Origin: Selaginella moellendorffii
Lineage: Eukaryota > Plantae > Lycopodiophyta
Length of the DNA stretch: 64,000 nt
Direction of reading: 5' to 3'
Assembly (NCBI RefSeq): GCF_000143415.4
Contig: NW_003314305.1
Coordinates: 191,325-255,324, forward strand
The notes beneath the pieces were generated by a model. That model was not told where the DNA came from, ran no database searches, and was given only the letters and a program-made list of their open reading frames with translations. Positions 39,154 through 64,000 of the stretch are shown here, one piece after another. Within the stretch, counting starts at the first letter, position 1. Every line of letters starts with the position of its first letter. A program made the position numbers and the translations under genes.

Positions 39154-39204
39154 TGTGGTTTGGCACAAAATAAAAGAGCTATGTTCTTGTTTAGAACAAT
39201 AAGC

Positions 39205-39330
39205 ATCCAACGGTTGATTTTTAAACTATTTTAGGGTATCCCATCCAACGGCTGACTTTTATAGGAAATTAGGGCCTCATCCAACGATTGATTTTTAAAG
39301 GATAGGAGTAGCCTTATCCAACGGTTGAGT
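39205..39330. repeat. Four spaced copies of ATCCAACG(G/A)YTGA (MSA-like motif or small MITE)
   Basis: catccaacggttgat (39205), catccaacggctgac (39242), catccaacgattgat (39278), tatccaacggttgag (39315). Confidence 0.7.
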
Positions 39331-39419
39331 ATGCTCAACGTGGCACAAAGATGCCTCTGCCACGTGTTACGTTTAATTAATCAATAATAATACTGTTACG
39401 GTAGTTAAGTGGAATACTT

Positions 39420-41450: not shown

Positions 41451-44400
41451 TCTCGGGCGAAATCGCGGTGGAATCACGCCGAAATATCGCTGCCCCGGGC
41501 CTCGCCGCCCTCCATCTCGTCACACATTGCCAAGAACAAGGAAGGGAGCGCTGCGCGCTCGCGCGGCGAATGGATCGATCTCCCCTTACATAGGCTCGAA
41601 CCCTGGCAATGGAATCGAAATCCCAGTGGTACCTTGCACCGCAGCTCTACCTAGCTCGAATCGATCACAAAGAGAATGCGATCGTCGCTCTCGCCGCTAG
41701 CGCTCGCTCCTCCACTTCTTCACATTGGCCTCCATATTACTCTCGCTAAAATAACCTCATCCTTAACAGTAGAACCCTAATCCCCCGTGGCACCGCCGTC
41801 GGATGGCCGCCATCGGACGACGCTAATTCTCCACCACATCCCGGCCGTCGGATCCCCGATCCAACGGTCAACGCGGCATTTAACTGGCTGCCCCCGTTAC
41901 GTGTGTCGCGCGCGCCGTAAAAGCCAAATCGCGCGGTAAGTTAACGGGAGGAAAGCTTACCGGCAGGGTAATCCAGCTGACTGACACCTGGCGGCGCAGC
42001 CGGTAGCGCGCGCAGGCTAAGATCTGGGCCACTACTGGGAAACTGGCGCAGTGCCAGTCAATGCGTGACATATTTTGGCAGGCTGGCACAAATTCCAGTT
42101 CCCCGCAGCAAACGTACGGCAGGGTACGGCCCGGTCACATTAATGCGGCGGCCGGCGATTCAGCTGTGTGGCCCCCTCATGGGAGTACGTACGAGGGAAT
42201 CAGATCTGGGGTTCGATTCCCAGCGCAAGCGTTTAGCACGATGCCCTTTGTAATCTAAATCTTTGTTTCCAAAGATTTCGTGCGGCAGTCTTTGGATGAA
42301 TTTCTAGAAGCGATGGACACCGCCCAAAATTCTTGGCGTGGACAGGCTTTGAAAATGCCGCGAGAGGGGAATCCGGATTAGGTCAAGGTGGCGTGGATCC
42401 AACGCTAAAGAGATCCATACGCATGCCGCTGGGGGCGTGATAAGTGGCATAAAACAATGGGCAAATGCCCAGTACACTTGGTGTATAGATTGTATAATTG
42501 ACACAGTCCAAGATGCCCGCGCGACGAGCTAGCTGATTGATTGACTGATTGATTGATCCATGGACGGAAGAGAATCTCAATCACAGACAAAAAGAGCGAG
42601 AGATTTAGGGTTTATCGCGCTTAAACCCTATACCCAAAAAGAGACGCGACGCTAGATTTGCAATGCCGCTGTTGGGCACTACACGGCCCATGTTTGGTCG
42701 GCTGCTATCATCCCACACGACAAACGAATTCCCTCAAATTCACCTTTCATATATGCCACCAAATCTAGCGGGCGGTCCCCCAGACTTGGCAAAACTAGCC
42801 TTAGCCCACTTTGAAAACGTCAAAAGAGATAGATCATCATCATGTAGATAGATATAGCTGGGGGAAGGCGTTACATCGCAGGCCCTGTACCATCGCCAAT
42901 GGCAAAATTCCACATCGGCCATTGGTCAGAAAAATCATAGTCCTTTGGATAGAGACGTACCACTAAGTGAGAACCACAGCAGTCGCTCTGCTCGGCGAAT
43001 ATACCCCTTGGGTGACCGCCACCTGGCGCCCAGTTTCTTGCCTGCCAGGCCAGACGATTTGGCCACCCCACTTCTGTGCCAATGAGCGTCCGGCCAAATC
43101 CAGCTCGCGTAACCAAATTGTCTGAAGTGGCCAGTGGATAGATAGGAATATCCGCCACGCATTCAAAGGTCATGCTGAAAAAGGTGGTGGTGCCAAGATT
43201 TAGGGCAAATGCAAGGCTCCCCAAAGGTCACTTTCGATTCGGACCCATTGCGAAAGAAGAAAAGTTGGCCTTGGCTCTATTTTTCGTGCGTGGTGTTGTG
43301 CACCACCTTGCTATTGTTGGCAAGTCTGAGGTAGGTGCCCGCCACCTTTCCACATCCGAGCGTGCGTGAGTATTAGGGTAACACATTCAAAGCATGTAGT
43401 TTAGGTGGGAGCCAGTCAAAAGAGTCCGAACCAAGATCAAGATCCCTGCTTGAACGTGGCAGTCAGAAACAGATTGTTTGTTGGGCCGGCAAAAATATTT
43501 CGTGGGCTGGCCGTACGAGCAAAGGTGGCGGGGTTTAGGTGTGTGTGTTTGTTTGGAGTGGAATATCTGCGCGAGTACGGGTATGGGTCAGTCCCGGATC
43601 CAATTCCCCGGAACTGGAAATCAGTTGAGCGGTGCTTTCCTCGACCCATTCTTTTGCTTTTACCCTTTGCACCCTTTTACCTTTGGGGGTTTTTATTCGT
43701 CCCCTCCACCACCTTTTACGTCATAAACCTTTGCGGGTCGGGTCAATTCGTCAATCAGTCAGCAGTCAGTGTGACCCAGAGTGTGTGTTTTGGGGTCACA
43801 AGCAAAGCGTGACACCGAGATAGACGAGCGAGACGTGTGTGATCAAAGGGCAAAAAAGATGATATGGAAATGGATTGGGCCGAGGGATGCATGCCTAGAA
43901 TCGTGGTGGGCCTGCGCTCTCCATCCCAATGACATATCTTTGTTGCATAAAAGCCAGATCTTTGTGGATGCCTCCAAGCCCGGCTCGCAATCCCTGTGGG
44001 GCTGGGGGGTAAAAGGCGTGTAAAAATCTTCTACTTTTCCTTTACCACTGGCTGCCTGTTACTCCCCTATCATCTGTTTTGTGTGCTGGTGTGCTTTGGT
44101 GGGGGTGTCAGCCAACCCTGTGTATCCTTGTCCCCGCAATCCGAGACAAGGCTCTTCATTGAGCGCCAGGACCACTTCCTCCAAATTCTTTTCCTTTCCT
44201 GGCCTAAATTGTCTAATTGGGTGTGATAAAATACCATAGCCTTGTGCACTGCATGTAGCTATAGGAATATTAGACACCCAAATATCTTGGAATAGTCCAA
44301 GGCATATGCCTCCCACGGTGTACGGCTTGGGCCATATGGCCACTTCAGGAAAGAAAAAGGTGGGAAAGCGACGGTAGCCGGTTTCAACGGGCGATGTGGA

Positions 44401-44835
44401 CTGAATAATGTGTGGTCCCGATCTGGCGCTCCTGTCACGTGGGCTTGTCTCGGCCGTCGGTATCCAGACGGTAGATCTCCCGGGCATTATTTTAGTAGTA
44501 AGTATTATTTTAGTCAATTAAGCTTGTTTAGTGTTTGTGTTGGCAGCGAGAAACATACCATTACTGTGGCCATGACAGTGTGTGCTCGAAATTTCACACA
44601 CGCCCTAAACAACAATATAGAATGAGATTTGATTATTTTTCTTTTGGGCACCCACAAGCCACATGGTGATAAGGTTGAATAAGGAGGTGACAGCGTGATC
44701 TGATATGAACCTTTGGAGTTTTTGATATGGCGAGTGCTGGTTATCCAACCTACACTGCGCATTGATGTTGGTGGCGGGGGAATATTATCAATCAATATTT
44801 AGCAAATTGGATCCTGTCTTTTGGAAAGTTTAATG

Positions 44836-44905
44836 TGATTTTCTGGTTGGGCATGAGCAATGGCCACGGGATGGGTTCAAGAGGTGAAAGAGAATCTAAT
44901 GCCAA
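44836..44905 (-). pseudogene. Truncated 5' stub of the PPR gene at the array boundary
   Basis: Identical to 54310-54379, but the PPR body is absent to the left. Confidence 0.85.
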
Positions 44906-45354
44906 AGTTGCAATGCTGATTCAGGCCTATTTAGAGCCATCCAGGCCAAATAGATTACAATTCTTATATTCTTTGTCCGCTCGGGGAGAAAGAAAAAAAA
45001 GCATATGTTGATCTGCAAACCAATGCTTTTGATTTCATTGGATTTTTAATCACAGCCCAGTGCGTTCTTAATGGCACAGAGGAGACAGGCCTGGAAGCAG
45101 CTGGGGGCGATTCTCCAGGACCAGAAAGCCTGACTAATCAAAGAGCCACGTAAATAGAAGCTCAAAGAACTATACGAAACAATGGAAAACATGGAAAGAC
45201 GATGGAAACAAGCTATGCGATGGAACAATGGAAAACAATGGAAAAAACACAACATCCAAGAACATCTTCGACGATTCATGACCCTCGACAACCTGGAGAG
45301 TCTACATGAGAACTCAGGAAACGACGGAAACTTCATTGCAAACTTACGGATTGC

Positions 45355-47275
45355 CTAGAACTGGGGACGGCCCTGCTGAAACCGGGAGGTGAAACTTTGC
45401 CCTCCGCATTCTAGCTCGACCTTCATGCCATCCCGAAAGCTGAGAACATACTCGGAGCACAAGTTTATGAGCTCGTGGCCGAGGACGAAATCGTGGCGAG
45501 CCAGATTCATGACCGCGAAATCCAGGCATCCCTTGAACCCGCCCTCGAGCTCAAACTCGAGGTCCGCCACTTTGCGATTGCTGGGCTGCGCGGTGCTCCC
45601 CACAAGCAGGTTGACGCTAAACGGACGGCACAGCGAAGTCGTCAGCCCGAGGCGGTTGACGGCGTTGACCGACACGAAGCTGTCCGAGTTCTGGCTGAGC
45701 ATGAAGGACGCCGGGCGGCCGTTGACCGTGCCCCGGAGCCAGCGGCCATAGTCGTCGTCGCCCATGAAGGACACCAGGCACGTCTTGGCCAGCGGCGCCG
45801 CCGTGAGCTCGGCTACCAAGTCTTGAGCCTCGTTCAAGCTGCCTGGCTGCTTGCCCGCCACGAACTCGGCCACCTCAGCGTTGGGCACCGACTGGAGAAA
45901 GCTGCATACCTCGAGAGGAAGAAGCTCCATTTCTTGCCCTAGGACCGTTTCAGGAGAAGAATATACCCGTGATTTTAAAACCCTGCTTGGGGCCCTGGTG
46001 CTCATCTCAAGATGTAGAGCCGCATCCAAATTCTCAGGGCTGTGCTTGAGATATCCCGGCACTACACTCTTTTCCAGGTCCTCAAGAACGTTAGCAGGGA
46101 ATATTCGCACCTTGTTCTTTTCGGCCCAAACCATGGTACGTGTACATTTGTTTTCCTTGATGATCTTTTTCATAGTTTCTGAGCCTTGTAGCTTGATCTT
46201 ATTCACCACCTGAACAACAATGACAGAAAAATACGACATCGGTCTCTAGAAGGTTTGCTATCAGTTTTCAGATCTTCTTACTAGGTGATTGTCATGGGCT
46301 ATGTTCCTCGAGGCGAGGGCACAGACGCAATGCCAGTGCATGACATCGGCGAGCACCTGGTACTCTTTCTCGGGAGGACGTGGTAGAGGGAGCGGAGGTT
46401 CAGGCCCTCTCCTAGAGTCTCACACCTGGATACGTCTTGGAGCTTGCAGCTTGATGCCGTCGCGAACGTGATAGTTGATGTGGATGAGCTGGCCAGCCTA
46501 AGGTCACAGTTCCAAAACACCATCAGGATATTATTCCATTGATGGTTTCATAGGTGCTTTTATTGATGAGGCTGTTCCCAAAGCTTATATAGCTTCGTCT
46601 TCTAAAATGATAGCCGAGCTTGGGAAACGTGAAAACCATGAGAATCATAACTTCTGGACGATGTCCAAGCCCTTTCATCACCTGCAAGTTAACAGAACTG
46701 AAAAGAGAAGCGAGCAGAAACTCACGGCGTTTACTCCTCAAACTGGGGACGACCCTGGTGGAACGGCGAGGTAAACTTCTGCCCACCGCCTAATCCAAAG
46801 TCGACCTTGATGATACCATCATCGTCCTTGTAAATCGCCTCGGAGCACACCTTCAAGAGCTGGTGCCCGAGGACGAAATCGTGGTGAATCAGATCCATAA
46901 CTGAAAAATCCATGCTGAAACTTGAGTTTGCGAACTTTGCGATTGTGGGGCGGAGAGGGGTTCCCGCCCAGGAACTTGACGCAAAACGGGCGGCACAGCG
47001 TCGTGGTCGGCCCCAGCCTATTGACCGCATTGACCGACACGAAGCTGTCCGAGTTCTGGCTCAGCATGAAGGATACCGGGCGGCCGTTGACCAGTTGCCG
47101 TAGTCCTCGTTGCCCATGTAGACACCCAGCACCGCTTGGCCAGCGGCGCCGCCGTGGCCACCACGGCTTGGGCCTCGCTCACGCTGCCTGGCTGCTTGGC
47201 CGCCACGAACTCGGCCACCTCGGTGTTTGACACCGACTGGAGATAGCTGTGTACCTCGAGAGAAAGAAGCTCCAT
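45355..47275 (-). CDS. Gag-CTD-like + retropepsin-like (pseudo)protease locus, copy 1; upstream module frameshifted, downstream module open
   Basis: FLQSVPNAEVAEFVAGKQPGSLNEAQDL (gypsy Gag-like) then LRGTVNGRPASFMLSQNSDSFVSVNAVNRLGL...DFVLGHELI (retropepsin pattern without D(S/T)G). Confidence 0.65.
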
Positions 47276-47987
47276 TTTTTCCTAACTTTTCTTGCCCTAC
47301 TGGGAGAAGAATATACTCAACAGAAAGTTTGCGCTATAGATGCCAAGCCAGGAGCATAAACAAAGAGCGAAAGAGTGAGGAGTGAAGCTTTCTTTCAGTA
47401 AAAGCAATACACTTTCCTGGTTGTTCTTGGACAAGGAAGTCCAGCTTAAATTAACAAATCTCACATGTACAAAACTATTAACAGTATATAATTTTTGGAA
47501 CCTGTATCTAAAATATACTAAAATATTTTGGAATATTCTACTATCTAAAAATGTTATTCATTTTGTATCTATATAAACTTTCTTAACCACTTACTAGCAT
47601 ATTCTAAGTTAATCTGATGTTTATAATTTATAACACAAGATTAATTTTATTACAAGCTATCAATATGATTAATAAATAATAAGCACTCAAATTATTTAAT
47701 TTTTAATTTTTGAGAAGAGAACCAATCATTTATGACATCTCCCACAATGATATCGCTCCATTCGGTACAAACACGTCCCATACAAGAACTTCCCACGTCC
47801 TCCAGTTTATCTGAGTCACTAAGAAATAAGAAACAAGAAAAGAATTGCTTTCTACCTGATTAGCAGAATGGTGTTGCTTGACGTCTTCAATCCCTTTGTT
47901 GGTAGCATGAAGGCAGAGCAAAAACAGCAGAGCAAATTTATTGATATTTCATCTTTATTTCATACATAACTATTTTCATATCGATCT

Positions 47988-48491
47988 TTAGTAAGGTTTC
48001 TGGCCTCCAACGTTGCCTGGTGGATCATAGTTGCAACTCACAATGTACGCATTCGCACCATTGCATTTCACTCGAGCGCATCCCACTCGCACCGAGTTCC
48101 TCCACACAACCTGAGTGTAGTGCCCGCACACCTTGCCCGGAGCACAAGTGTTTGATGCGTAATTGTAATCAGCCTTTTCCTTCACCCATTCTTTGACTGC
48201 GTCCGTGGCTGGAGGCGGCGCCAAGCCATCGCTCCCCCTCCACATATACAAGTTCTCGCCATACGGCCCGCTAGAGTGGACCATTTGACAGCTCGCCTGG
48301 AGAGTCGAGGCCCAGTTTTGCGCATACGAGGCAACTTGCTCGTTCCAAACCAGCGGAGGAACATTAACAGCAGATCTCGCGGAGTTGTGTGCGTCGACAA
48401 GATCACTCTCCGTGCTTGCAAGACCTGCGTGGAGAAATCCAGTGCCATAGATCACAAGAACCATTAGAGTTGCACGAAGAACTCCCCCCAT
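47988..48491 (-). CDS. PR1: Pathogenesis-related protein 1 (CAP/SCP), secreted, copy 1
   Basis: Signal peptide; HNSAR, HSSGPYGENL, CGHYTQVVWRNSVRVGC, CNYDPPGN..GQKPY; ATG at 48491. Confidence 0.96.
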   Translation of the reverse strand: MGGVLRATLMVLVIYGTGFLHAGLASTESDLVDAHNSARSAVNVPPLVWNEQVASYAQNWASTLQASCQMVHSSGPYGENLYMWRGSDGLAPPPATDAVKEWVKEKADYNYASNTCAPGKVCGHYTQVVWRNSVRVGCARVKCNGANAYIVSCNYDPPGNVGGQKPY

Positions 48492-48885
48492 AGCGATCAA
48501 ACTAGAACGCGGATTGCACAACTAAAAAGTATAGGAGCACGAAAACTTACTGTGGGAGACCATCCTCTTATAAAGCAGAGCGTAGGCATGGGGATCTCCC
48601 TTTGGATACGGCAAATACATTTCTTCTTAATGTTAGTCTTGCTTGCTCGCACGAGATTTTCCACGTCGTTATGCTCGTTTTTTTCTTGATCAATGACAAG
48701 AGATGGGTCAGTGACTTGACTTAACCGGCATGACCTTCCAGAATTCCACAAGATGGTTGCTGGGAACTTAAATAGTTCTATAGATCATAGATCATCAAGA
48801 ATAAAGATGACCTACAAATTAACGAATATACCAAGAAAAGTATGCAAGTATATGATTCTCTTCGATTAGGTCATAGATAGAGAAC
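48492..48885. promoter_or_regulatory. Divergent promoter PR1/vWA with W-box cores
   Basis: ggtcagtgacttgactt at ~48706-48722 (TTGACT and TGACC on the opposite strand), TGACC at ~48731 and ~48808, TATA-like TTTATAA on the minus strand at ~48568-48574. Repeated at 57961-58354. Confidence 0.55.
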
Positions 48886-50582
48886 ATGGCGGCAGGGTTT
48901 GAGAATTCCGAGGTAAGCAGCACGCTCCAGGAAGACGAGATCGTCCATCTTAGCGAGGAGCTAGGCTGGCTAGTGATTGGCGAGCAGCCGGAGCTCAAGA
49001 TCATCGGCGAGGTCGACAAGATCAAGGCCAGGGGAGAAGAAGAAGAAGAAGAAGAGCGATGCTATACAGCGCTCGTCCATCTCAAAGCTCCCAAAAGCGA
49101 TAGCTCCGATGATGCTCGCGCCCCGGTCGATCTGGTCACAGTGCTGGACGTGAGCGGCAGCATGCGCGGCCAGAAGCTGGAGCTCGTCAAGACCGCCATG
49201 GAGTTTGTGATCCGGAATTTGCGACAGCAGGACCGCCTCGCGATCGTCTCCTTCTCGGACGAGCCCAAAGTCCATCTCGGTCTCAAGAGGATGACTTACG
49301 ACGGTCGAGAGGCGGCACTCAGTGCAGTGGAGAAGCTGCGGACCCTGGGAGGGACCGAGATCCGTCCGGGGCTAAAGGCTGGATTCGATCTTCTCTCGCG
49401 GCGCAGGAACAGGAACCCGGTGTCGAGCATCATGCTTCTCTCGGACGGGATGGACAATGCGATCACGTTCAAGCGATGCAAAGTTCTTCCAGTGGATTCC
49501 TACCTCGAGGACTGCAGTGAGCGGGTTCCAGTGCACACTTTCGGATTTGGAAGTGACCATGATCCCGAGGCCATGCTCAGCATCGCCGAGGCCACAGGCG
49601 GCAGCTTTTGCTACGTGCAAGAGGAGTCCACCGTCCAGCACGCGTTTGCTCAGTGCATTGGCGGGCTGCTTAGCGTGGTGGCACAGGAAGTGGAGGTCTG
49701 CATCGAGGCGAGTGGCGGAGCGAAGATCAGGAGTGTGGAAGCCACCGCCGGAACGACGGCCATGGATGGCGATCGAGCTGCGACAGTGAAGCTTGGATCC
49801 TTGTACGCGGAAGAGGAGAGAGATATCCTGGTGGAGCTCTTGCTGCCTAGCTCTGACTCGAGCTCTTCGTCGATGGAACTTCTCAAAGTTGGGGGGAGCT
49901 TTCGAGACCCCGGGCAGTCGAACAAGACCCAGCAGTTTGCAACTTCGAGCTTGGTAATCCAGGAGCTCAAAGCTGGCGAAGAAGAGGAGGCGGTAAGGAT
50001 TGAGGTGGACAGGCAGAAGAACCGTGTGAGTGCCTCGAAGGCGATGGCTGCCGCTCGTAAGCTGGGGTCTGGCAGCTTGGCATCGGCAAAGCAAGCGCTG
50101 GTGGACGTGAAGGAAAAGATTGAGAGCTCCCGAGCGTTTGGAGCTGGCGATGGCTTGTCCAAGAGATTGGTGAGAGAACTCGACGAGCTGATCCAGTGCA
50201 TGAAGGAGGATTATTACCAGTTTGGGGGGCATGCCATGCTGCTTGCCAAGGGGAATTCTCACTGCAACCAGCGAGCTTCGTACCAGCCAACGTACCAGCC
50301 AACATGTAAGACATTTTGGACAGCTCTTTTGTGTTCTAACTCTTGTGAACTCTCTTCTCTCTCTTTGAATCAGCCCGTTTTGCCGGTTGCAGCAGCAACA
50401 ACGTACCTCTCTGTGGCAGCACCAACCACAGCAGCAGCAACGTAGCGTTCGCAAACTTTAGCAAATTCGATTTCCACGCTAGAAGTTCCTTGGCACAAGA
50501 CGATGAGCCAGAGACATCCTATGAAACGTCGGCGATGGTAGATATGCTGGACAAGTCTAAGAAGTTCAAGAGTAATAGATAA
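48886..50582 (+). CDS. vWA-Vwaint protein (RING-less WAV3-family-like), copy 1; intron 50306-50373
   Basis: RAPVDLVTVLDVSGSM (MIDAS), GGTEI, IMLLSDG, PVHTFGFGSDHD, AFAQCIGGLLSVVAQE, SHCNQRAS. The spliced last exon restores SYETSAMVDMLDKS. Confidence 0.9.
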
Positions 50583-51027
50583 ATCTAGATTTTTCTATTT
50601 GATGCATGTTGCGGTGTGTTGGTGGAAACATGGAGAAGTTAAGCAAAAGAGCAGAATCACAGAACTTACAGATCACTGGAAACCTGGTGAAAGCCCTTGC
50701 AGCTGTGGCATCCTAGTTGATGTTGCAAGCATAAACAGTAAGATAAAGGGAGATAACCAGCTTTATACTTGAGAATGGCATCACCATCTTTAAGCAAGCA
50801 ACCTCTCCATTTTGTGATCAAACTAAAGATGGAGAGAGCTGGATTTTGTGAGCTTTTGATAAGCTGATTCATTGCAGCGTTTTCTCGAAATCAAATACAT
50901 GGCGATGGCGTTCCAGGACAAAACGTAATAGTTATAATAGATACCCTTGTTCAGTAAAGGTATAAAGTTCGAAACCTTCGCCCACACGGCAAGTAGCTAG
51001 CTACGTAAATAGCTCTCTTCGATTACA

Positions 51028-52739
51028 ATGGCGGCAGGATTTGAGAAATCCGAGGTAAGCAGCATGGATCTCACGCTCCAGGAAGACGAGATCGTCCATC
51101 TTAGCGAGGAGCTAGGCTGGCTAGTGATTGGCGAGCAGCCGGAGCTCAAGATCATCGGCGAGGTCGACAAGATCAAGGCCAGGGGAGAAGAAGAAGAAGA
51201 GCGATGCTATACAGCGCTCGTCCATCTCAAAGCTCCTAAAAGCGATAGCTCCGATGATGCTCGCGCCCCGGTCGATCTGGTCACAGTGCTGGACGTGAGC
51301 GGCAGCATGCGCGGCCAGAAGCTGGAGCTCGTCAAGACCGCCATGGAGTTTGTGATCCGGAATTTGCGACAGCAGGACCGCCTCGCGATCGTCTCCTTCT
51401 CGGACGAGCCCAAAGTCCATCTCGGTCTCAAGAGGATGACTCACGACGGTCGAGCCGCGGCACTCAGTGCAGTGGAGAAGCTCCGGAGCTTGGGAGGAAC
51501 AGAGATCCGTCCAGGGCTAAAGGCTGGATTCGATCTTCTTTCGCGGCGCAAGAATAGGAACCCGGTGTCGAGCATCATGCTTCTCTCGGACGGGATGGAC
51601 AATGCGATCACGTTCAAGCGATGCAAAGTTCTTCCAGTGGATTCCTACCTCGAGGACTGCAGTGAGCGGGTTCCAGTGCACACTTTCGGATTTGGAAGTG
51701 ACCATGATCCCGAGGCCATGCTCAGCATCGCCGAGGCCACAGGCGGCAGCTTTTGCTACGTGCAAGAGGAGTCCACCGTCCAGCACGCGTTTGCTCAGTG
51801 CATTGGCGGGCTGCTTAGCGTGGTGGCACAGGAAGTGGAGGTCTTCATCGAGGCGAGTGGCGGAGCGAAGATCAAGAGTGTGGAGGCCACCGCCGGGATG
51901 ACAGCCATGGATGGAGATCGAGCTGCGACGGTGAAGCTTGGATCCCTGTATGCGGAAGAGGAGAGAGATATCCTGGTGGAGCTCTTGCTGCCTAGCTCCG
52001 ACTCGAGCTCTTTGTCGATGGAACTTCTCAAAGTTGAGGGAAGCTTTCAAGACCCTGGGCATTCGAACAAGACCCAACTGCTTGCAACTTCGAGCTTGGT
52101 GATCCAGGAGCTCAAAGCTGGCGAAGAGGAGGAGGCGACAAAGATCGAGGTGGACAGGCAGAAGAACCGTGTGAGTGCCTCGAAGGCGATGGCTGCCGCT
52201 CGTAAGCTGGGGTCTGGCAGCTTGGCGTCGGCAAAGCAAGTGCTGGTGGACGTGAAACAAAAGATAGAGAGCTCCCGAGCGTTTGGAGCTGGCGATGGCT
52301 TGTCCAGGAGATTGGTGAGAGAACTCGACGAGCTGATCCAGTGCATGAAGCGGGATTATTACCACTCCGAGGGACATGCTGTGCTGCTTGCCAAGGGGAA
52401 TTCTCACTGCAACCAGCGAGCTTCGTACCAGTCGAGAGGTAAGACATTTTGGACAGCTCTTTTGTGTTCTAACTCTTGTGAATTTTGTTACTTAAATCAG
52501 CACGGAAGCGCCCCGCCTTTTTCGAAGGTGGCAGAGGTGGCAGAGGGGGCAGAGGTGCTGGTGCTAAACCACGGAGCAATGCAGCTCCTTGTCTTGGTGC
52601 TAGTGCTAAAAGAATGAGCACTGGTGGGGTTCTTTCAGAAAGCCTGGTACAAGAGACATCCTCAGATGATGAGTCGTACCGAACGTCGGCGATGGTAGAT
52701 ATGCTGGACAAATCCAAGAAATTCAAGAGTAAGAGATAG
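51028..52739 (+). CDS. vWA-Vwaint protein copy 2; intron 52439-52500
   Basis: As copy 1; last exon ARKRPAFFEGGRGGRGGRG...SYRTSAMVDMLDKSKKFKSKR*. Confidence 0.9.
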
Positions 52740-53308
52740 ATCTAGATTTCAAGTTGACAAAGCTCGAACTTGACAAGCATAAGTGTGTTCCGAACTCCAA
52801 AGTAAGCGTTTCTGGCCCAACACGATCCAGATCCAGCCATTCCCCATCCAATGGTCAGGTCAACGACAAGAAATAGTCAACGACCCATACCTAAGCGTCC
52901 GACGTGAAAGCACTGGGCCTTCTTATGGAGTTTGCATTGCTATCGTTTTCTGGACTTTTCTCCTCAATCAGTTTGCAGAGCCAGATGCTCGAAGCCCTGA
53001 TGCTGCACTCCACAGTCAAGATGATGGGAGCTCCCATCAATGCTGATTAAACTGGAGGGTTTTCAAAGCTCTACTTCAGAAATCTGGTGTGGACAATCAG
53101 CCCATACAATTACCTTTGCTATGTTCCAGAACAAGAAGCTTATTGTCTATCAATCTAAGGAGGACATGTAACTTCTTGCTCCTTCTGTCACATGCATTTT
53201 TAACAAAAGTAGTCTTCTTCAGAGAAACAAATAGATCTTGTTCAATTCAGAGAGGAGAGGTAGTAATTGTGGATGAAACCGACTGTATTAAATATTTATA
53301 CACATTGT

Positions 53309-54328
53309 CTAGTTTGTTATGCTAGCAAGAAGCATGTAAGGACTTGCTCTAAGGAGCTTTTGATCCTGTTGTAAGTAGAAGATGTTACTGGCTACTCGTG
53401 CCCCACATTCCACATCGTTCTGTAGTCTACAGGCACTCAGCAAACATCCCCATGAAACGTCATCGGGAGTGAATGGCATGCTGTGAATCAACTCTTCTGC
53501 CTCGTGAATCCTTCCCATTCTCGCCAGAATGTCTATCATGCATCGGAAGTTTTCCACTGACGGTCTAAAGTCGTGATCAAAAGCCATGGATCTAAACCAC
53601 GACAGCGCCTCCTGGAGCATTCCTTCGTGGCTAAACGCAAACAAAATCCCTGTGACTGTCGTCTCCTCGCAGTTGACACCTTCAACGCACATCCTGAACG
53701 ATAGCTCCAACGCAGTTTGGATGTAACCTTTTTGAGCATAAGCAACGATCATAGCATTCCAGGAAACCGTGTTTTTCTCATGCATTTGGTGGAAGATTTC
53801 TTTTGCTTCGAAAAGATGGCCATTATGGGCATGCGTTACGATCAGAGCATTCAAGACTGATGTTTCTTGAGAAGCGTTCCAAGGGATTAAATCTCTGGCT
53901 TGAGTCACGTTTCCATTCTCTCCACAAGCGATTACCATGCTTGTCCATGACAGATTATTGCTCGCCGGGATTTTCTCGAGCAAAGCTTTTGCGTGATCTA
54001 GATATCCAGCAGTGGCTAAAGCTGAAATTGCAGCGTTCCAACACATAAGGTCACGCATGGGGCACCTCTCAAAGTAAACTTTCGCTTCTTCCAACTTCCT
54101 CTTGGACACGAGCACACACACCATTGAAGTCCAGCTTATCACGCTCCACCCCGGCATTTTCCAGAATGTCGTTGTGGCCATGCAAAGATTACCAGAATCC
54201 GCGTTTGCTTGAAGTATAGTCGTCCACGAAGCCAAGTTTCTCTGAGGCATGTCGCCAAAAAGCTCGCAAACTTTCTCAGTATTAAGATTCTCGCGGTACA
54301 TCTGAAGCATGATTTTCTGGTTGGGCAT
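53309..54328 (-). CDS. PLS-class pentatricopeptide repeat protein with E domain (no DYW)
   Basis: Repeats MPQRNLASWT, MPGWSVISWTSM, NTVSWNAMIVAYAQKG, FRCMIDILARMGRIHEAEELIHSMPFTPDDVSWGCLLSACR, ASPYMLLASI. First ATG at 54328. Confidence 0.88.
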   Translation of the reverse strand: MPNQKIMLQMYRENLNTEKVCELFGDMPQRNLASWTTILQANADSGNLCMATTTFWKMPGWSVISWTSMVCVLVSKRKLEEAKVYFERCPMRDLMCWNAAISALATAGYLDHAKALLEKIPASNNLSWTSMVIACGENGNVTQARDLIPWNASQETSVLNALIVTHAHNGHLFEAKEIFHQMHEKNTVSWNAMIVAYAQKGYIQTALELSFRMCVEGVNCEETTVTGILFAFSHEGMLQEALSWFRSMAFDHDFRPSVENFRCMIDILARMGRIHEAEELIHSMPFTPDDVSWGCLLSACRLQNDVECGARVASNIFYLQQDQKLLRASPYMLLASITN

Positions 54329-54831
54329 GAGCAATGGCCACGGGATGGGTTCAAGAGGTGAAAGAGAATCTAATGCCAAAGTTGCAATGCTGATTCAGGC
54401 CTATTTAGAGCCATCCAGGCCAAATAGATTACAATTCTTATATTCTTTGTCCGCTCGGGGAGAAAGAAAAAAAAAGCATATGTTGATCTGCAAACCAATG
54501 CTTTTGATTTCATTGGATTTTTAATCACAGCCCAGTGCGTTCTTAATGGCACAGAGGAGACAGGCCTGGAAGCAGCTGGGGGCGATTCTCCAGGACCAGA
54601 AAGCGTGACTAATCAAAGAGCCACGTAAAGAGAAACTCAGAGAACTATACGAAACAATGGAAAACATGGAAAGACGATGGAAACAAGCTCTGCGATGAAA
54701 CAATGGAAAACAATGGAAAAAACACAACATCCAAGAACATCTTCTCGACGATTCATGACCCTCGACAACCTGGAGAGTCTACATGAGAACTCAGAAAACG
54801 ACGGAAACTTCATTGTAAACTTACGGATAAC

Positions 54832-56752
54832 CTAAAACTGGGGACGGCCCTGCTGAAACCGGGAGGTGAAACTTTGCCCTCCGCATTCTAGCTCGACCTT
54901 CATGCCATCCCGAAAGCTGAGAACATACTCGGAGCACAAGTTTATGAGCTCGTGGCCGAGGACGAAATCGTGGCGAGCCAGATTCATGACCGCGAAATCC
55001 AGGCATCCCTTGAACCCGCCCTCGAGCTCAAACTCGAGGTCCGCCACTTTGCGATTGCTGGGCTGCGCGGTGCTCCCCACAAGCAGGTTGACGCTAAACG
55101 GACGGCACAGCGAAGTCGTCAGCCCGAGGCGGTTGACGGCGTTGACCGACACGAAGCTGTCCGAGTTCTGGCTGAGCATGAAGGACGCCGGGCGGCCGTT
55201 GACCGTGCCCCGGAGCCAGCGGCCATAGTCGTCGTCGCCCATGAAGGACACCAGGCACGTCTTGGCCAGCGGCGCCGCCGTGAGCTCGGCTACCAAGTCT
55301 TGAGCCTCGTTCAAGCTGCCTGGCTGCTTGCCCGCCACGAACTCGGCCACCTCAGCGTTGGGTACCGACTGGAGAAAGCTGCATACCTCGAGAGGAAGAA
55401 GCTCCATTTCTTGCCCTAGGACCGTTTCAGGAGAAGAATATACCCGTGATTTTAAAACCCTGCTTGGGGCCCTGGTGCTCATCTCAAGATGTAGAGCCGC
55501 ATCCAAATTCTCAGGGCTGTGCTTGAGATATCCCGGCACTACACTCTTTTCCAGGTCCTCAAGAACGTTAGCAGGGAATATTCGCACCTTGTTCTTTTCG
55601 GCCCAAACCATGGTACGTGTACATTTGTTTTCCTTGATGATCTTTTTCATAGTTTCTGAGCCTTGTAGCTTGATCTTATTCACCACCTGAACAACAATGA
55701 CAGACAAATACGACATCGGTCTCTAGAAGGTTTGCTATCAGTTTTCAGATCTTCTTACTAGGTGATTGTCATGGGCTATGTTCCTCGAGGCGAGGGCACA
55801 GACGCAATGCCAGTGCATGACATCGGCGAGCACCTGGTACTCTTTCTCGGGAGGACGTGGTAGAGGGAGCGGAGGTTCAGGCCCTCTCCTAGAGTCTCAC
55901 ACCTGGATACGTCTTGGAGCTTGCAGCTTGATGCCGTCGCGAACGTGATAGTTGATGTGGATGAGCTGGCCAGCCTAAGGTCACAGTTCCAAAACACCAT
56001 CAGGATATTATTCCATTGATGGTTTCATAGGTGCTTTTATTGATGAGGCTGTTCCCAAAGCTTATATAGCTTCGTCTTCTAAAATGATAGCCGAGCTTGG
56101 GAAACGTGAAAACCATGAGAATCATAACTTCTGGACGATGTCCAAGCCCTTTCATCACCTGCAAGTTAACAGAACTGAAAAGAGAAGCGAGCAGAAACTC
56201 ACGGCGTTTACTCCTCAAACTGGGGACGACCCTGGCGGAACGGCGAGGTAAACTTCTGCCCACCGCCTAATCCAAAGTCGACCTTGATGATACCATCATC
56301 GTCCTTGTAAATCGCCTCGGAGCACACCTTCAAGAGCTGGTGCCCGAGGACGAAATCGTGGTGAATCAGATCCATAACTGAAAAATCCATGCTGAAACTT
56401 GAGTTTGCGAACTTTGCGATTGTGGGGCGGAGAGGGGTTCCCGCCCAGGAACTTGACGCAAAACGGGCGGCACAGCGTCCTGGTCGGCCCCAGCCTATTG
56501 ACCGCATTGACCGACACGAAGCTGTCCGAGTTCTGGCTCAGCATGAAGGATACCGGGCGGCCGTTGACCAGTTGCCGTAGTCCTCGTTGCCCATGTAGAC
56601 ACCCAGCACCGCTTGGCCAGCGGCGCCGCCGTGGCCACCACGGCTTGGGCCTCGCTCACGCTGCCTGGCTGCTTGGCCGCCACGAACTCAGCCACCTCGG
56701 TGTTTGACACCGACTGGAGATAGCTGTGTACCTCGAGAGAAAGAAGCTCCAT
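54832..56752 (-). CDS. Gag-CTD-like + retropepsin-like (pseudo)protease locus, copy 2
   Basis: Near-identical to copy 1, including the same frameshifts in the upstream module. Confidence 0.65.
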
Positions 56753-57456
56753 TTTTTCCTAACTTTTCTTGCCCTACTGGGAGAAGAATATACTTAACAG
56801 AAAGTTTGCGCTAGGAGCATAAACAAAGAGCGAAGGAGTGAGGAGTGAAGCTTTCTTTCAGTAAAAGCAATACACTTTCCTGGTTGTTCTTGGACAAGGA
56901 AGTCCAGCTTAAATTAACAAATCTCACATGTACAAAATTATTAACAGTATATAATTTTTGGAACCTGTATCTAAAATATACTAAAATATTCTGGTTTATT
57001 TTACTATCTAAAGATTGTTATTCATTTTGTATCTATAATTTATAAACTTTCTTAACCACTTACTAGTATATTCTAAGTTAATCTGATGTTTATAATTTAT
57101 AACACAAGATTAATTTTATTACAAGTTATCAATGTGATTAATAAATAAAAAGCACTCAAATTATTTAATTTCTAATTTTTGAGAAGATAACCAATCGTTT
57201 ATGACATCTCCCACAATGATATCGCTCCATTCGGTACAAACACGTCCCATACAAGAACTTCCCACGTCCTCCAGTTTATCTGAGTCACTAAGAAATAAGA
57301 AACAAGAAAAGAATTGCTTTCTACCTGATTAGCAGAATGGTGTTGCTTGACGTCTTCAGTCCCTTCGTTGGTAGCATAAAGGCAGAGCAAAAACAGCAGA
57401 GCAAATTTATTGATATTTCATCTTTATTTCATACATAACTATTTTCATATCGATCT

Positions 57457-57960
57457 TTAGTAAGGCTTCTGGCCTCCAACGTTGCCTGGTGGATCATAGT
57501 TGCAACTCACAATGTACGCATTCGCACCATTGCATTTCACTCGAGCGCATCCCACTCGCACCGAGTTCCTCCACACAACCTGAGTGTAGTGCCCGCACAC
57601 CTTGCCCGGAGCACAAGTGTTTGATGCGTAATTGTAATCAGCCTTTTCCTTCACCCATTCTTTGACTGCGTCCGTGGCTGGAGGCGCCACCAAGCCATCG
57701 CTCCCCCTCCACATATACAAGTTCTCGCCATACGGCCCTTTAGAGTGGACCATTTGACAGCTCGCCTGGAGAGTCGAGGCCCAGTTTTGCGCATACGAGG
57801 CAACTTGCGTGCTCCAAACCAGCGGAGGAACATTAACAGCAGATCTCGCGGAGTTGTGTGCGTCGACAAGATCACTCTCCGTGCTTGCAAGACCTGCGTG
57901 GAGAAATCCAGTGCCATAGATCACAAGAACCATTAGAGTTGCACGAAGAACTCCCCCCAT
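57457..57960 (-). CDS. PR1: PR-1 copy 2
   Basis: As copy 1, with five amino-acid differences. Confidence 0.96.
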   Translation of the reverse strand: MGGVLRATLMVLVIYGTGFLHAGLASTESDLVDAHNSARSAVNVPPLVWSTQVASYAQNWASTLQASCQMVHSKGPYGENLYMWRGSDGLVAPPATDAVKEWVKEKADYNYASNTCAPGKVCGHYTQVVWRNSVRVGCARVKCNGANAYIVSCNYDPPGNVGGQKPY

Positions 57961-58354
57961 AGCGATCAAACTAGAACGCGGATTGCACAACTCAAAAGTA
58001 TAGGAGCACGAAAACTTACTGTGGGAGACCATCCTCTTATAAAGCAGAGCGTAGGCATGGGGATCTCCCTTTGGATACGGCAAATACATTTCTTCTTAAT
58101 GTTAGTCTTGCTTGCTCGCACGAGATTTTCCACGTCGTTATGCTCGTTTTTTTCTTGATCAATGACAAGAGATGGGTCAGTGACTTGACTTAACCGGCAT
58201 GACCTTCCAGAATTCCACAAGATGGTTGCTGGGAACTTAAATAGTTCTATAGATCATAGATCATCAAGAATAAAGATGACCTACAAATTAACGAATATAC
58301 CAAGAAAAGTATGCAAGTATATGATTCTCTTCGATTAGGTCATAGATAGAGAAC

Positions 58355-60069
58355 ATGGCGGCAGGGTTTGAGAATTCCGAGGTAAGCAGCACGCTCCAGG
58401 AAGACGAGATCGTCCATCTTAGCGAGGAGCTAGGCTGGCTAGTGATTGGCGAGCAGCCGGAGCTCAAGATCATCGGCGAGGTCGACAAGATCAAGGCCAG
58501 GGGAGAAGAAGAAGAAGAAAAAGAGCGATGCTATACAGCGCTCGTCCATCTCAAAGCTCCCAAAGACGATAGCTTGGCCGCCGCCGATGCTCGCGCCCCG
58601 GTCGATCTGGTCACAGTGCTGGACGTGAGCGGCAGCATGCGCGGCCAGAAGCTGGAGCTCGTCAAGACCGCCATGGAGTTTGTGATCCGGAATTTGCGAC
58701 AGCAGGACCGCCTCGCGATCGTCTCCTTCTCGGACGAGCCCAAAGTCCATCTCGGTCTCAAGAGGATGACTCACGACGGTCGAGCCGCGGCACTCAGTGC
58801 AGTGGAGAAGCTCCGGAGCTTGGGAGGAACAGAGATCCGTCCAGGGCTAAAGGCTGGATTCGATCTTCTTTCGCGGCGCAAGAATAGGAACCCGGTGTCG
58901 AGCATCATGCTTCTCTCGGACGGGATGGACAATGCGATCACGTTCAAGCGATGCAAAGTTCTTCCAGTGGATTCCTACCTCGAGGACTGCAGTGAGCGGG
59001 TTCCAGTGCACACTTTCGGATTTGGAAGTGACCATGATCCCGAGGCCATGCTGAGTATCGCGGAGGCCACAGGCGGAAGCTTTTGCTACGTGCAAGAGGA
59101 GTCCACCGTCCAGCACGCGTTTGCTCAGTGCATTGGCGGGCTGCTTAGCGTGGTGGCACAGGAAGTGGAGGTCTTCATCGAGGCGAGTGGCGGAGCGAAG
59201 ATCAAGAGTGTGGAGGCCACCGCCGGGATGACAGCCATGGATGGAGATCGAGCTGCGACGGTGAAGCTTGGATCCCTGTATGCGGAAGAGGAGAGAGATA
59301 TCCTGGTGGAGCTCTTGCTGCCTAGCTCCGACTCGAGCTCTTTGTCGATGGAACTTCTCAAAGTTGAGGGAAGCTTTCAAGACCCTGGGCAGTCGAACAA
59401 GACCCAACTGCTTGCAACTTCGAGCTTGGTGATCCAGGAGCTCAAAGCTGGCGAAGAAGAGGAGGCGACAAAGATCGAGGTGGACAGGCAGAAGAACCGT
59501 GTGAGTGCCTCGAAGGCGATGGCTGCCGCTCGTAAGCTGGGGTCTGGCAGCTTGGCGTCGGCAAAGCAAGTGCTGGTGGACGTGAAACAAAAGATAGAGA
59601 GCTCCCGAGCGTTTGGAGCTGGCGATGGCTTGTCCAGGAGATTGGTGAGAGAACTCGACGAGCTGATCCAGTGCATGAAGCGGGATTATTACCACTCCGA
59701 GGGACATGCTGTGCTGCTTGCCAAGGGGAATTCTCACTGCAACCAGCGAGCTTCGTACCAGTCGAGAGGTAAGACATTTTGGACAGCTCTTTTGTGTTCT
59801 AACTCTTGTGAATTTTGTTACTTAAATCAGCACGGAAGCGCCCCGCTTTTTTCGAAGGTGGCAGAGGTGGCAGAGGGGGCAGAGGTGCTGGTGCTAAACC
59901 ACGGAGCAATGCAGCTCCTTGTCTTGGTGCTAGTGCTAAAAGAATGAGCACTGGTGGGGTTCTTTCAGAAAGCCTGGTACAAGAGACATCCTCAGATGAT
60001 GAGTCGTACCGAACGTCGGCGATGGTAGATATGCTGGACAAATCCAAGAAATTCAAGAGTAAGAGATAG
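58355..60069 (+). CDS. vWA-Vwaint protein copy 3; intron 59769-59830
   Basis: 5' flank and N-terminus like copy 1; body and 3' end like copy 2. Confidence 0.9.
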
Positions 60070-60633
60070 ATCTAGATTTCAAGTTGACAAAGCTCGAACT
60101 TGACAAGCATAAGTGTGTTCTGAACTCCAAAGCAAGCGTTTCTGGCCCAACACGATCCAGATCCAGCCATTCCCCATCCAATGGTCAGGTCAACGACAAG
60201 AAATAGTCAACGACCCATACTTAAGCGCCCGACGTGAAAGCACTGGACCTTCTTATGGAGTTTGCATTGCTATCGTTTTCTGGACTTTTCTCCTCAATCA
60301 GTTTGCAGAGCCAGATGCTCGAAGCCCTGATGCTGCACTCCACAGTCAAGATGATGGGAGCTCCCATCAATGCTGATTAAACTGGAGGGTTTTCAAAGCT
60401 CTACTTCAGAAATCTGGTGTGGACAATCAGCCCATACAATTACCTTTGCTATGTTCCAGAACGAGAAGCTTATTGTCTATCAATCTAAGGAGGACATGTA
60501 ACTTCTTGCTCCTTCTGTCACATGCATTTTTAACAAAAGTAGTCTTCTTCAGAGAAACAAATAGATCTTGTTCAATTCAGAGAGGAGAGGTAGTAATTGT
60601 GGATGAAACCTATTAAATATTTATACACATTGT

Positions 60634-61644
60634 CTAGTTTGTTATGCTAGCAAGAAGCATGTAAGGACTTGCTCTAAGGAGCTTTTGATCCTGTTGTAAG
60701 TAGAAGATGTTACTGGCTACTCGTGTCCCACATTCCACATCGTTCTGTAGTCTACAGGCACTCAGCAAACTTCCCCATGAAACGTCATCGGGAGTGAATG
60801 GCATGCTGTGAATCAACTCTTCTGCCTCGTGAATCCTTCCCATTCTCGCCAGAATGTCTACCATGCATCGGAAGTTTTCCACTGACGGTCTAAAGTCGTG
60901 ATCAAAAGCCATGGATCTAAACCACGACAGCGCCTCCTGGAGCATTCCTTCGTGGCTAAACGCAAACAAAATCCCTGTGACTGTCGTCTCCTCGCAGCTG
61001 ACACCTTCAAGGCACATCCTGAACGATAGCTCCAACGCAGTTTGGATGTAACCTTTTTGAGCATAAGCAACGATCATAGCATTCCAGGAAACCGTGTTTT
61101 TCTCATGCATTTGGTGGAAGATTTCTTTTGCTTCGAAAAGATGGCCATTATGGGCATGCGTTACGATCAGAGCATTCAAGACTGATGTTTCTTGAGAAGC
61201 GTTCCAAGGGATTAAATCTCTGGCTTGAGTCACGTTTCCATTCTCTCCACAAGCGATTACCATGCTTGTCCATGACAGATTATTGCTCGCCGGGATTTTC
61301 TCGAGCAAGTGATCTAGATATCCAGCAGTGGCTAAAGCTGAAATTGCAGCGTTCCAACACATAAGGTCACGCATGGGGCACCTCTCAAAGTAAACTTTCG
61401 CTTCTTCCAACTTCCTCTTGGACACGAGCACACACACCATTGAAGTCCAGCTTATCACGCTCCACCCCGGCATTTTCCAGAATGTCGTTGTGGCCATGCA
61501 AAGATTACCAGAATCCGCGTTTGCTTGAAGTATAGTCGTCCACGAAGCCAAGTTTCTCTGAGGCATGTCGCCAAAAAGCTCGCAAACTTTCTCAGTATTA
61601 AGATTCTCGCGGTACATCTGAAGCATGATTTTCTGGTTGGGCAT
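60634..61644 (-). CDS. PLS-E PPR protein copy 2 (9-bp in-frame deletion, AKA)
   Basis: Near-identical to 53309-54328. Confidence 0.88.
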   Translation of the reverse strand: MPNQKIMLQMYRENLNTEKVCELFGDMPQRNLASWTTILQANADSGNLCMATTTFWKMPGWSVISWTSMVCVLVSKRKLEEAKVYFERCPMRDLMCWNAAISALATAGYLDHLLEKIPASNNLSWTSMVIACGENGNVTQARDLIPWNASQETSVLNALIVTHAHNGHLFEAKEIFHQMHEKNTVSWNAMIVAYAQKGYIQTALELSFRMCLEGVSCEETTVTGILFAFSHEGMLQEALSWFRSMAFDHDFRPSVENFRCMVDILARMGRIHEAEELIHSMPFTPDDVSWGSLLSACRLQNDVECGTRVASNIFYLQQDQKLLRASPYMLLASITN

Positions 61645-64000
61645 GAGCAATGGCCACGGGATGGGTTCAAGAGGTGAAAGAGAATCTAATGCCAAAGTTG
61701 CAATGCTGATTCAGGCCTATTTAGAGCCATCCAGGCCAAATAGATTACAATTCTTATATTCTTTGTCCGCTCGGGGAGAAAGAAAAAAAAAGCATATGTT
61801 GATCTGCAAACCAATGCTTTTGATTTCATTGGATTTTTAATCACAGCCCAGTGCGTTCTTAATGGCACAGAGGAGACAGGCCTGGAAGCAGCTGGGGGCG
61901 ATTCTCCAGGACCAGAAAGCGTGACTAATCAAAGAGCCACGTAAAGAGAAACTCAGAGAACTATACGAAACAATGGAAAACATGGAAAGACGATGGAAAC
62001 AAGCTCTGCGATGAAACAATGGAAAACAATGGAAAAAACACAACATCCAAGAACATCTTCTCGACGATTCATGACCCTCGACAACCTGGAGAGTCTACAT
62101 GAGAACTCAGAAAACGACGGAAACTTCATTGTAAACTTACGGATAACCTAAAACTGGGGACGGCCCTGCTGAAACCGGGAGGTGAAACTTTGCCCTCCGC
62201 ATTCTAGCTCGACCTTCATGCCATCCCGAAAGCTGAGAACATACTCGGAGCACAAGTTTATGAGCTCGTGGCCGAGGACGAAATCGTGGCGAGCCAGATT
62301 CATGACCGCGAAATCCAGGCATCCCTTGAACCCGCCCTCGAGCTCAAACTCGAGGTCCGCCACTTTGCGATTGCTGGGCTGCGCGGTGCTCCCCACAAGC
62401 AGGTTGACGCTAAACGGACGGCACAGCGAAGTCGTCAGCCCGAGGCGGTTGACGGCGTTGACCGACACGAAGCTGTCCGAGTTCTGGCTGAGCATGAAGG
62501 ACGCCGGGCGGCCGTTGACCGTGCCCCGGAGCCAGCGGCCATAGTCGTCGTCGCCCATGAAGGACACCAGGCACGTCTTGGCCAGCGGCGCCGCCGTGAG
62601 CTCGGCTACCAAGTCCTGAGCCTCGTTCAAGCTGCCTGGCTGCTTGCCCGCCACGAACTCGGCCACCTCAGCGTTGGGCACCGACTGGAGAAAGCTGCAT
62701 ACCTCGAGAGGAAGAAGCTCCATTTCTTGCCCTAGGACCGTTTCAGGAGAAGAATATACCCGTGATTTTAAAACCCTGCATTGAGCGTTTGGTGGTGCTC
62801 ACCTTCAAGATGTAGAGCCGCATCCAAATCCTCAGGGCTGTGCTTGAGATATCCCGGCACTACACTCTTTTCCAGATCTTCAAGAACGTTAGCAGGGAAT
62901 ATTCGCACCTTGTTCTTTTCGGCCCCAAACCCATGCATTATTCAGACATGGTACGTGTACATTTGTTTTCCTTGATGATCTTTTTGATAGTTTCTGAGCC
63001 TTGTAGCTTGATCTTATTCACCACCTGAACAACGATGACAAGTGTGGTTACAGCGAGGAATCAAAAACCTTGTTTCGACTTCCTCAAGTTCGCAATGTGC
63101 CAGGCCGAACAGAACCTGCTTGTTGGCCGCCCTGACGTCCAGAGCCTGCAAAAGAGTGCGAGAGGAGTCGCTATGTAAAAGGAGCTCGACAAATACGATA
63201 TCGGTCTCTAGAAGGTTTGCTATCAGTTTTCAGATTTTCTTACTAGGTGATTGTCATGGGCTATTTTCCTGGAGGCGAGGGCACAGACGCAATGCCAGTG
63301 CATGACATCGGCGAGCACCTGGTACTCTTTCTCGAGAGGACGTGGTAGAGGGAGCGGAGGTTCAGGTCCTCTCCTAGAAGTCTCATACCTGGATACGTCT
63401 TGGAGCTTGCAGCTTGATGCCAGAGTTGATGTGCATGAGCTGGCCAGCCTAAGGTCACAGTTCCAAAACACCATCAGGATACTTCTGGACGATGTCCAAG
63501 CCCTTTCATCACCTGCAAGTTAACAGAACTGAAAAGAGAAGCGAGCAGAAACTCACGCCGTTTACTCCTCAAACTGGAGACGCCCCTGGTGGAACGGCGA
63601 GGTAAACTTCTGCCCACCACCTAATCCAAAGTCGACCTTGATGATACCATCATCGTCCTTGTAAATCGCCTCGGAGCACACCTTCAAGAGCTGGTGCCCG
63701 AGGACGAAATCGTGGTGAATCAGATCCATGACTGAAAAATCCATGCAGCCCTTGTACCCGCCCTCAAGCTGAAACTTGAGTTTGCGAACTTTGCGATTGT
63801 GGGGCGGAGAGGGGTTCCAGCCCAGGAACTTGACGCAAAACGGGCGGCATAGCGTCGTGGTCGGCCCCAGCCTATTGACCGCATTGACCGACACGAAGCT
63901 GTCCGAGTTCTGGCTCAGCATGAAGGATACCGGGCGGCCGTTGACCGTGCCCCGGAGCCAGTTGCCGTAGTCCTCGTTGCCCATGTAGCACACCCAGCAC
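61626..64000. repeat. Tandem unit 3 (partial, more divergent after ~62780)
   Basis: Near-identical to unit 2 up to ~62780, then indels and SNPs. Confidence 0.9.
62148..64000 (-). CDS. Gag-CTD-like + retropepsin-like (pseudo)protease locus, copy 3; upstream module intact, 5' end off-window
   Basis: ORF 63562-63993 CYMGNEDYGNWLRGTVNGRPVSFMLSQNSDSFVS...EGGYKGCMDFSVMDLIHHDFVLGHQ is uninterrupted; downstream module is ORF 62148-62723. Confidence 0.7.

Follow-up and report, generated by a model that had tools for sequence, protein, structure and literature searches.

A probable haplotype-specific tandem segmental duplication carrying PR-1, vWA and retropepsin-like genes in Selaginella moellendorffii

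At the soybean locus Rhg1, a multi-gene unit of 31 kb occurs once, three times or ten times (Cook et al. 2012, via PMC4455779), and its copy number is described in PMC4455779 as setting resistance. Here we analyze a locus of the lycophyte Selaginella moellendorffii that resembles this system, located in a 64,000-nucleotide stretch of contig NW_003314305.1 (positions 191,325 to 255,324; hereafter the window, in whose coordinates all positions are given). In this locus, a segment carrying a PR-1 gene, a vWA (von Willebrand factor A) gene, a gene encoding a retropepsin-like protein that appears catalytically dead (the protease-like gene), and part of a pentatricopeptide repeat (PPR) gene is repeated in tandem.

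By analogy, multi-gene tandem copy-number variants such as Rhg1 would be the closest known kind. As in Rhg1, unrelated genes lie on a segment whose head-to-tail copies all share one junction, the haplotypes differ in copy number (here three versus one), and the transcript of at least one resident gene, here vWA, rises with copy number. Unlike at Rhg1, the unit measures only 7.3 kb, it carries a set of genes with no relation to the soybean ones, and the gene at its boundary, PPR, is simply truncated. The likeness concerns sequence and transcript share. An initial annotation of the window had suggested that the repeated unit may be a defence cassette under common regulation and not a chance duplication. 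We instead consider it likely, with a probability of roughly 65%, that the locus is a haplotype-specific tandem segmental duplication whose gene content is incidental.

Repeat units and the single-copy allele

Self-BLAST and a repeat finder were applied to the window, and the sequence of its scaffold (GL377609.1, GCA_000143415.2) was extended beyond the window to the equivalent of position 75350. Three head-to-tail units were found, in agreement with the repeat coordinates of the initial annotation, which had described units of ~9.47 kb and ~7.32 kb and a partial third. Unit A spans 44836-54309 (9474 bp) and unit B spans 54310-61625 (7316 bp), while unit C occupies 61626-64000 in the window and continues to ~69013 of the scaffold, after which no fourth unit occurs up to the 75350 equivalent. 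By self-BLAST, 44836-50349 matches 54310-59812 (97.4%), 51028-55702 matches 58355-63040 (98.0%) and 44836-46225 matches 61626-63040 (96.7%); in pairwise comparisons of aligned bases the three units are mutually 98.2-99.3% identical. The sequence of the array is gap-free, with no runs of N in the scaffold stretch up to 65716, which agrees letter for letter with the window over 44832-64000. Unit A is longer than unit B because it contains two vWA genes (A1 and A2), its surplus of 2145 bp corresponding to a second, nested vWA gene (48886-50349 resembles 51028-52482 at 94%). The array haplotype carries 3 PR-1, 4 vWA and 3 protease-like genes, together with 1 intact and 2 truncated PPR genes.

The S. 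moellendorffii assembly contains both haplotypes of one plant, which are ~98.5% identical (PMC8839085). The left flank of the array runs collinear with scaffold GL377567.1 (locus L001), at 98.6% identity over 10.6 kb (35363-45992), and since this figure matches that between the haplotypes, the GL377567.1 locus shows the divergence expected of an allele. It harbors one unit only, in reversed orientation, with the order subtilase, 592-aa PPR gene, vWA, PR-1, protease-like gene, and a flank with a phosphofructokinase gene. On the window scaffold, too, unit C gives way to the PPR gene at its full 592 aa, with a subtilase beyond it. Units A-C are 96.7-98.1% identical to the allelic unit, below their identity to one another. 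The locus thus appears, from these comparisons, to be a three-versus-one copy-number difference between haplotypes and not two alleles laid in tandem; the initial annotation had listed such a mis-assembly among the findings that would refute its proposal, but the allele is assembled separately with its own single unit, and the array units are closer to each other than to it.

Sequence comparison places the A/B junction at 54310-54313, and an identical junction recurs between units B and C at 61626-61629. At both, the PPR side and the unit-start side have only the 4-bp microhomology TGAT in common. The repeat boundary corresponds to position 5270 of L001, inside the PPR coding region. Because the junction falls within the 592-aa PPR gene, the PPR copies of units A (53309-54309, open reading frame (ORF) to 54379) and B (60634-61625, ORF to 61695), both on the minus strand, are 5'-truncated fragments that retain the C-terminal 334 of 592 residues. 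The first 22 codons of these two ORFs are read-through of the junction, opening with a TTG 'start'. The PPR identity of the domain is supported by Pfam, and the coding region is complete only in the 592-aa genes at the array end and on the allelic scaffold. A PPR transcript contig carries the alleles of the other haplotype at 13/13 informative sites and runs on past the junction into the full-length gene, and therefore derives from the other haplotype's full-length PPR; the few raw PPR reads display only unit C or allelic-haplotype alleles at 53724 and 53791. Thus, of the four-gene cassette initially described, the joint amplification of PPR, PR-1, vWA and protease-like sequences stands, but the idea of four intact genes does not. 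As the unit boundary cuts the PPR gene, gene content was fixed by the positions of the breakpoints, and the PPR "member" appears to be a by-product of where the break occurred.

These data can be accommodated by a simple scheme. The ancestral order, as on the allelic scaffold, would have been flank, Gag/dead-protease gene, PR-1, vWA, PPR, subtilase. One non-homologous event, using the TGAT microhomology, may have joined the middle of PPR to a site ~520 bp beyond the protease-like gene, creating a 7.3-kb direct repeat. Unequal crossing-over between the two copies would then have given rise to the third, which would explain why the junctions are identical. The vWA gene would have been duplicated again within unit A, and gene conversion may hold the copies at 98-99% identity and have made vWA A1 a mosaic. 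Within A1 (48886-50592), some 200-bp tracts are allele-like and others A2-like, a pattern that looks like the product of gene conversion, and because of this mosaic structure we abandoned the ordering of the duplications by divergence. The last 350 aligned columns of A1, which form the linker, are highly diverged, with the conserved C-terminal tail kept.

Genes carried by the unit

The vWA genes lie on the plus strand at 48886-50582 (A1; 542-aa model P0007, with the mosaic structure and diverged C-terminal linker described above), 51028-52739 (A2; 549-aa model, lacking the spacer on the PR-1 side) and 58355-60069 (B; 550 aa, P0006). Searches were conducted with the first exon and the database models P0006-P0008. 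The vWA domain was detected at 66-78 bits (PF00092, PF13768, PF13519), whereas Vwaint scored 20.9-22.2 bits in the window copies, under the Pfam cut-off of 23.5, and 24.3 bits, over that cut-off, in the paralog P0008 (86% identity). Neither a Pfam match to a RING finger nor a RING pattern was found in P0006-P0008; the vWA domain begins at residue 82, and the 394-bp spacer that separates vWA from PR-1 is too short for a RING exon. The initial description of these genes as RING-less is therefore borne out.

Compared with the WAV3/WAVH/EDA40 E3 ligases, the vWA domain and the region that follows are alike, with ~40-45% identity to WAV3-like RING-vWA-Vwaint proteins across land plants, but the window proteins differ in their missing RING, their long branch and their sub-threshold Vwaint. 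In a FastTree phylogeny of 40 proteins, they form a very long branch beside a RING-bearing S. moellendorffii member, a join that is unsure given the branch length. RING-less proteins arise many times within the WAV3-like family in this tree, and with such relatives being common the window vWA is not new in kind. The gene thus encodes a RING-less, fast-evolving WAV3-family protein, which, having no RING finger, cannot act by itself as an E3 ligase of the WAV3 type. The ratio of nonsynonymous to synonymous substitution rates (dN/dS), computed on the first 1410 bases only, was 0.12-0.38 in all comparisons of exon 1, which indicates purifying selection on the vWA copies. The vWA paralog closest to them (86%), present on both haplotypes, has no PR-1 or protease-like neighbor. 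Separately, one haplotype of a paralogous vWA locus (GL377586.1, L005:802-1853) carries an extra partial vWA copy with 83-93% protein identity. Over the same span this copy is not seen on the other haplotype (L004), making the locus a further candidate for vWA duplication in one haplotype only.

The protease-like ORFs are found on the minus strand at 45355-46239 in unit A (conserved domain 45358-45903), 54832-55716 in unit B (294 aa) and 62148-62723 in unit C (191 aa, the upstream part being broken by indels). RNA coverage of the gene ends near 55540-55560, and the first 60-100 codons of the 294-aa ORF, and likewise of its unit A counterpart, are therefore probably untranslated. Each unit holds a second, older paralogous retropepsin-like domain on the same strand, which is frameshifted in units A (46731-47281, where tblastn splits the match over frames) and B (56217-56758). 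By contrast, this domain is intact in unit C (63571-64122, extending past the window end at 64000) and, by tblastn, on the allelic haplotype, where gene model P0001 merges the two domains. Between the two paralogous domains of a unit dS is 0.46 and dN 0.21, giving a dN/dS (omega) of 0.46, which implies past coding constraint.

Pfam returned no match for the 294-aa ORF and its window relatives even at E=10, and no capsid match. A word-based protein search recovered only the locus itself on both haplotypes, and an exhaustive search recovered five proteins, namely the two haplotype copies, P0003, P0004 and P0005. In both searches, all relatives of traced source came from S. moellendorffii. P0003, a lone S. 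moellendorffii gene with 50% identity, passes Pfam thresholds for Ty3_capsid (34.2 bits), Retrotrans_gag and RVP_2. P0004 (574 aa; L007:906-2630, from a Logan contig of SRR33208242) contains ~4 tandem RVP_2/retropepsin-like domains, all without the catalytic Asp, while P0005 is a true retropepsin with an intact DSG; both pass RVP_2. Opposite the catalytic DSG of P0005, the alignment has SQN in the two window paralogs and SN in P0003, and since SQN replaces the catalytic Asp-Ser/Thr-Gly, no protease activity would be expected. A profile of the family matches the DDI1 RVP domains in the PDB (E 1e-4), and for an AlphaFold model (pLDDT, the predicted local distance difference test score, of 63; core 70-90) the top Foldseek matches were all DDI1, EIAV, HIV or SIV proteases. 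The window copies retain only the last ~40 residues of the capsid region.

Transitive homology and the fold search together suggest that the ORF is a Ty3/gypsy-derived Gag tail followed by a retropepsin fold that is catalytically dead, in line with the retroelement-derived pseudoprotease that had been proposed for it. Like the RVP domain of DDI1 and mammalian PEG10, it combines a retropepsin fold with an apparent C-terminal tail of a Ty3-type capsid before it, in a single-copy-type host gene that lacks reverse transcriptase and integrase and is transcribed and spliced. It differs from them in the replaced catalytic Asp-Ser/Thr-Gly and in having traced relatives in S. moellendorffii only. P0003 itself (L003:10001-11334, GL377569.1), whose retropepsin-like domain lacks the Asp, is flanked by genes for oxidosqualene cyclase and protein disulfide isomerase, among unrelated genes and not with vWA or PR-1; it seems to be a second member of the family, either domesticated or decaying.

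PR-1 genes occupy the minus strand at 47988-48491 in unit A (intronless, 167 aa, Pfam CAP at 82.7 bits) and 57457-57960 in unit B. Across copies the CAP domain (PF00188) scores 79-83 bits, six cysteines and a hydrophobic N-terminus are present, and identity to angiosperm PR-1 proteins is 50-60%. Among solved structures, the unit B copy matches the basic PR-1 9lyt (E 3.6e-42) and next tomato P14a 1cfe (E 5.1e-36). The CAPE1 motif consists of CNYx followed by PxGNxxxxxPY (PMC12584273), and in 4/4 copies the C-terminus reads CNYD followed by an exact match to PxGNxxxxxPY, as the initial annotation had noted for CNYD and the CAPE peptide. The genes thus encode canonical PR-1 members with a CAPE motif. 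Comparison of the four copies shows nonsynonymous variation at 13 codons and synonymous variation at 2; positive selection (dN/dS > 1) was considered, but this ratio is not significantly off neutrality (binomial estimate, P ~0.19), and we therefore do not claim it. In comparison with tandem PR-1 clusters of land plants, PR-1 is here likewise tandemly duplicated with its CAP domain and CAPE1 motif, but it is a passenger of a larger mixed segment and not part of a PR-1-only array, its copies are nearly silent in RNA, and nonsynonymous changes outnumber synonymous ones.

Outside the array, the left flank contains a phosphofructokinase gene (two ORFs, 37648-39153, plus strand) and a 544-aa gene without Pfam domains (~39407-41477, minus strand), neither of which is defence-related.

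Transcript output and competing explanations

Expression was assessed over 53000-58900 in two raw RNA sequencing (RNA-seq) runs of unknown treatment (X21 and X22) and two contig sets. The vWA gene, strongly transcribed, reached an RNA depth of 46-100 with the strand expected for plus-strand RNA, the protease-like gene a depth of 1-7 on its own strand, and PR-1 depths of 0 and ~2 in the two runs. One RNA-type contig covers 54836-55539 of the protease-like gene, and in an RNA-type contig of run X1 a 55-nt GT..AG intron (54768-54822, minus strand), located just downstream of the protease-like stop, is joined. Variants private to the allelic vWA copy made up 19% and 27% of the reads, leaving ~73-81% to the array haplotype. 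Transcript from the array copies taken together thus amounts to ~3-4 times that from the lone allelic copy, a ratio in which the read-mapping threshold may under-count the latter. These shares fit approximately three active copies on the array haplotype versus one on the other. Variants private to A2 were not reported among the RNA reads (<10%).

Three further observations concern vWA transcripts. At 58708, ~20% of the vWA RNA reads carry T, while A1, A2, B, C and the allele all have C, suggesting a copy missing from the assembly or a difference between strains. Within 58122-58366, no RNA reads cover the positions up to 58318, and the first base of an RNA-type contig is 58361, just past the annotated vWA ATG at 58355; the gene would thus have either a very short 5' untranslated region or a true start codon downstream of the annotated one. 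Finally, loose read ends at 58390 stem from clipped reads with the N-terminal variant of P0008, and this paralog is thus expressed in the same samples.

Several points weigh against an incidental duplication. The PR-1, vWA and first-domain protease ORFs are open in every unit, as under selected amplification; with more copies the array haplotype also contributes more of the transcript, and selection could act on such a dosage effect; the two RNA runs are untreated-looking, and as PR-1 is normally inducible, they may be compatible with co-induction; and the array comes from one Sanger-era assembly, no independent read or contig among those listed bridging a unit junction.

The alternative that fares best is a selected, Rhg1-like dosage amplification, in which vWA would be the likeliest target, or else PR-1, with the remaining genes hitch-hiking. 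The three-versus-one difference and the array's share of vWA reads are as such amplification would have them, as are the purifying selection on all vWA copies and the additional vWA duplication inside unit A, and Rhg1 itself, as portrayed in the source cited above, provides the precedent. In addition, vWA/Vwaint occurs as an integrated domain in the wheat resistance proteins Lr9 (PMC10260399) and Pm57 (PMC11153570), and by this analogy a defence link of the vWA gene is conceivable. However, the extra vWA A2 lacks the shared spacer and left no reported trace in RNA, the transcript share may be inflated by the mapping threshold, and the 13-to-2 ratio of a nearly silent PR-1 fits drift as well as selection. 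We therefore view selected dosage as possible but unlikely.

Considerably less probable is the co-regulated defence cassette of the initial annotation, in which PR-1 and vWA, driven by a common W-box promoter, would work jointly with the dead protease and PPR. The two genes are indeed head-to-head, as had been reported, across a spacer of 394 bp in both unit A (48492-48885) and unit B (57961-58354). The CAPE motif is kept in all PR-1 copies, the trio of PR-1, vWA and protease-like genes is adjacent on both haplotypes, and the protease-like domain is constrained, transcribed and spliced. Yet the unit boundary truncates the PPR, the allele has one unit, and in units A and B the second protease domain is degenerate. 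W-box cores are present in the spacers as described, but only as one TTGACY each (TTGACT at 48716 and 58185), and no enrichment accompanies them, the whole window having 64 TTGACY against 75.6 expected by shuffling, which is chance level. Co-expression was likewise not seen, the RNA depths of vWA and PR-1 across their shared spacer differing at least 30-fold, albeit in two runs only. Moreover, the adjacency does not recur at the paralogous loci of any family: within the sequence examined, neither a vWA nor a protease-like gene accompanies three other PR-1 loci, and the paralogous vWA, PR-1 and Gag-protease loci of the genome never combine two of the three families. Neither search traced relatives of the protease-like gene to any other named species.

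Of similarly low probability is an assembly artefact, whereby allelic or paralogous reads were mis-joined into tandem units and the true locus is single-copy. The assembly does contain both haplotypes, the unit-B-private allele at 55363 is absent from RNA reads, and the junction at 54310 is bridged by no listed record among the two RNA-seq runs, the contig sets and run X16, which probably represents DNA of another genotype. Against this, the other haplotype forms a separate scaffold of distinct sequence, the array has no N gaps, and its units are mutually closer than to the allele. Two alleles could also not supply three units plus a nested copy, with substitutions and indels private to each, and an allelic share of ~20-27% of vWA reads, and not 50%, fits several active copies on the array haplotype.

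Finally, the trio being a lycophyte-specific functional unit, in which the domesticated, dead Gag-protease binds or shields the PR-1 C-terminus (the CAPE precursor) or a pathogen protease, vWA serves as scaffold or decoy, and the three-versus-one difference is a selected resistance dosage polymorphism resembling Rhg1 in a non-seed plant, would be conceivable but is the least probable of the readings considered.

Implications of the locus

Taken as a haplotype-specific segmental duplication, the locus would offer a well-resolved lycophyte case of how such tandem duplications arise and evolve, including a microhomology junction, unequal crossing-over, gene conversion, truncation of the boundary gene and transcript levels that follow copy number, one heterozygous individual displaying both copy-number states. 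It also cautions that the gene content of a repeat unit should not be taken as a functional module. The most interesting resident may be the transcribed and constrained gene for a Gag tail and an apparently dead retropepsin, whose traced relatives are in S. moellendorffii alone. If copy number did prove to affect pathogen resistance, the locus would be the first of the Rhg1 type in a plant other than a seed plant.

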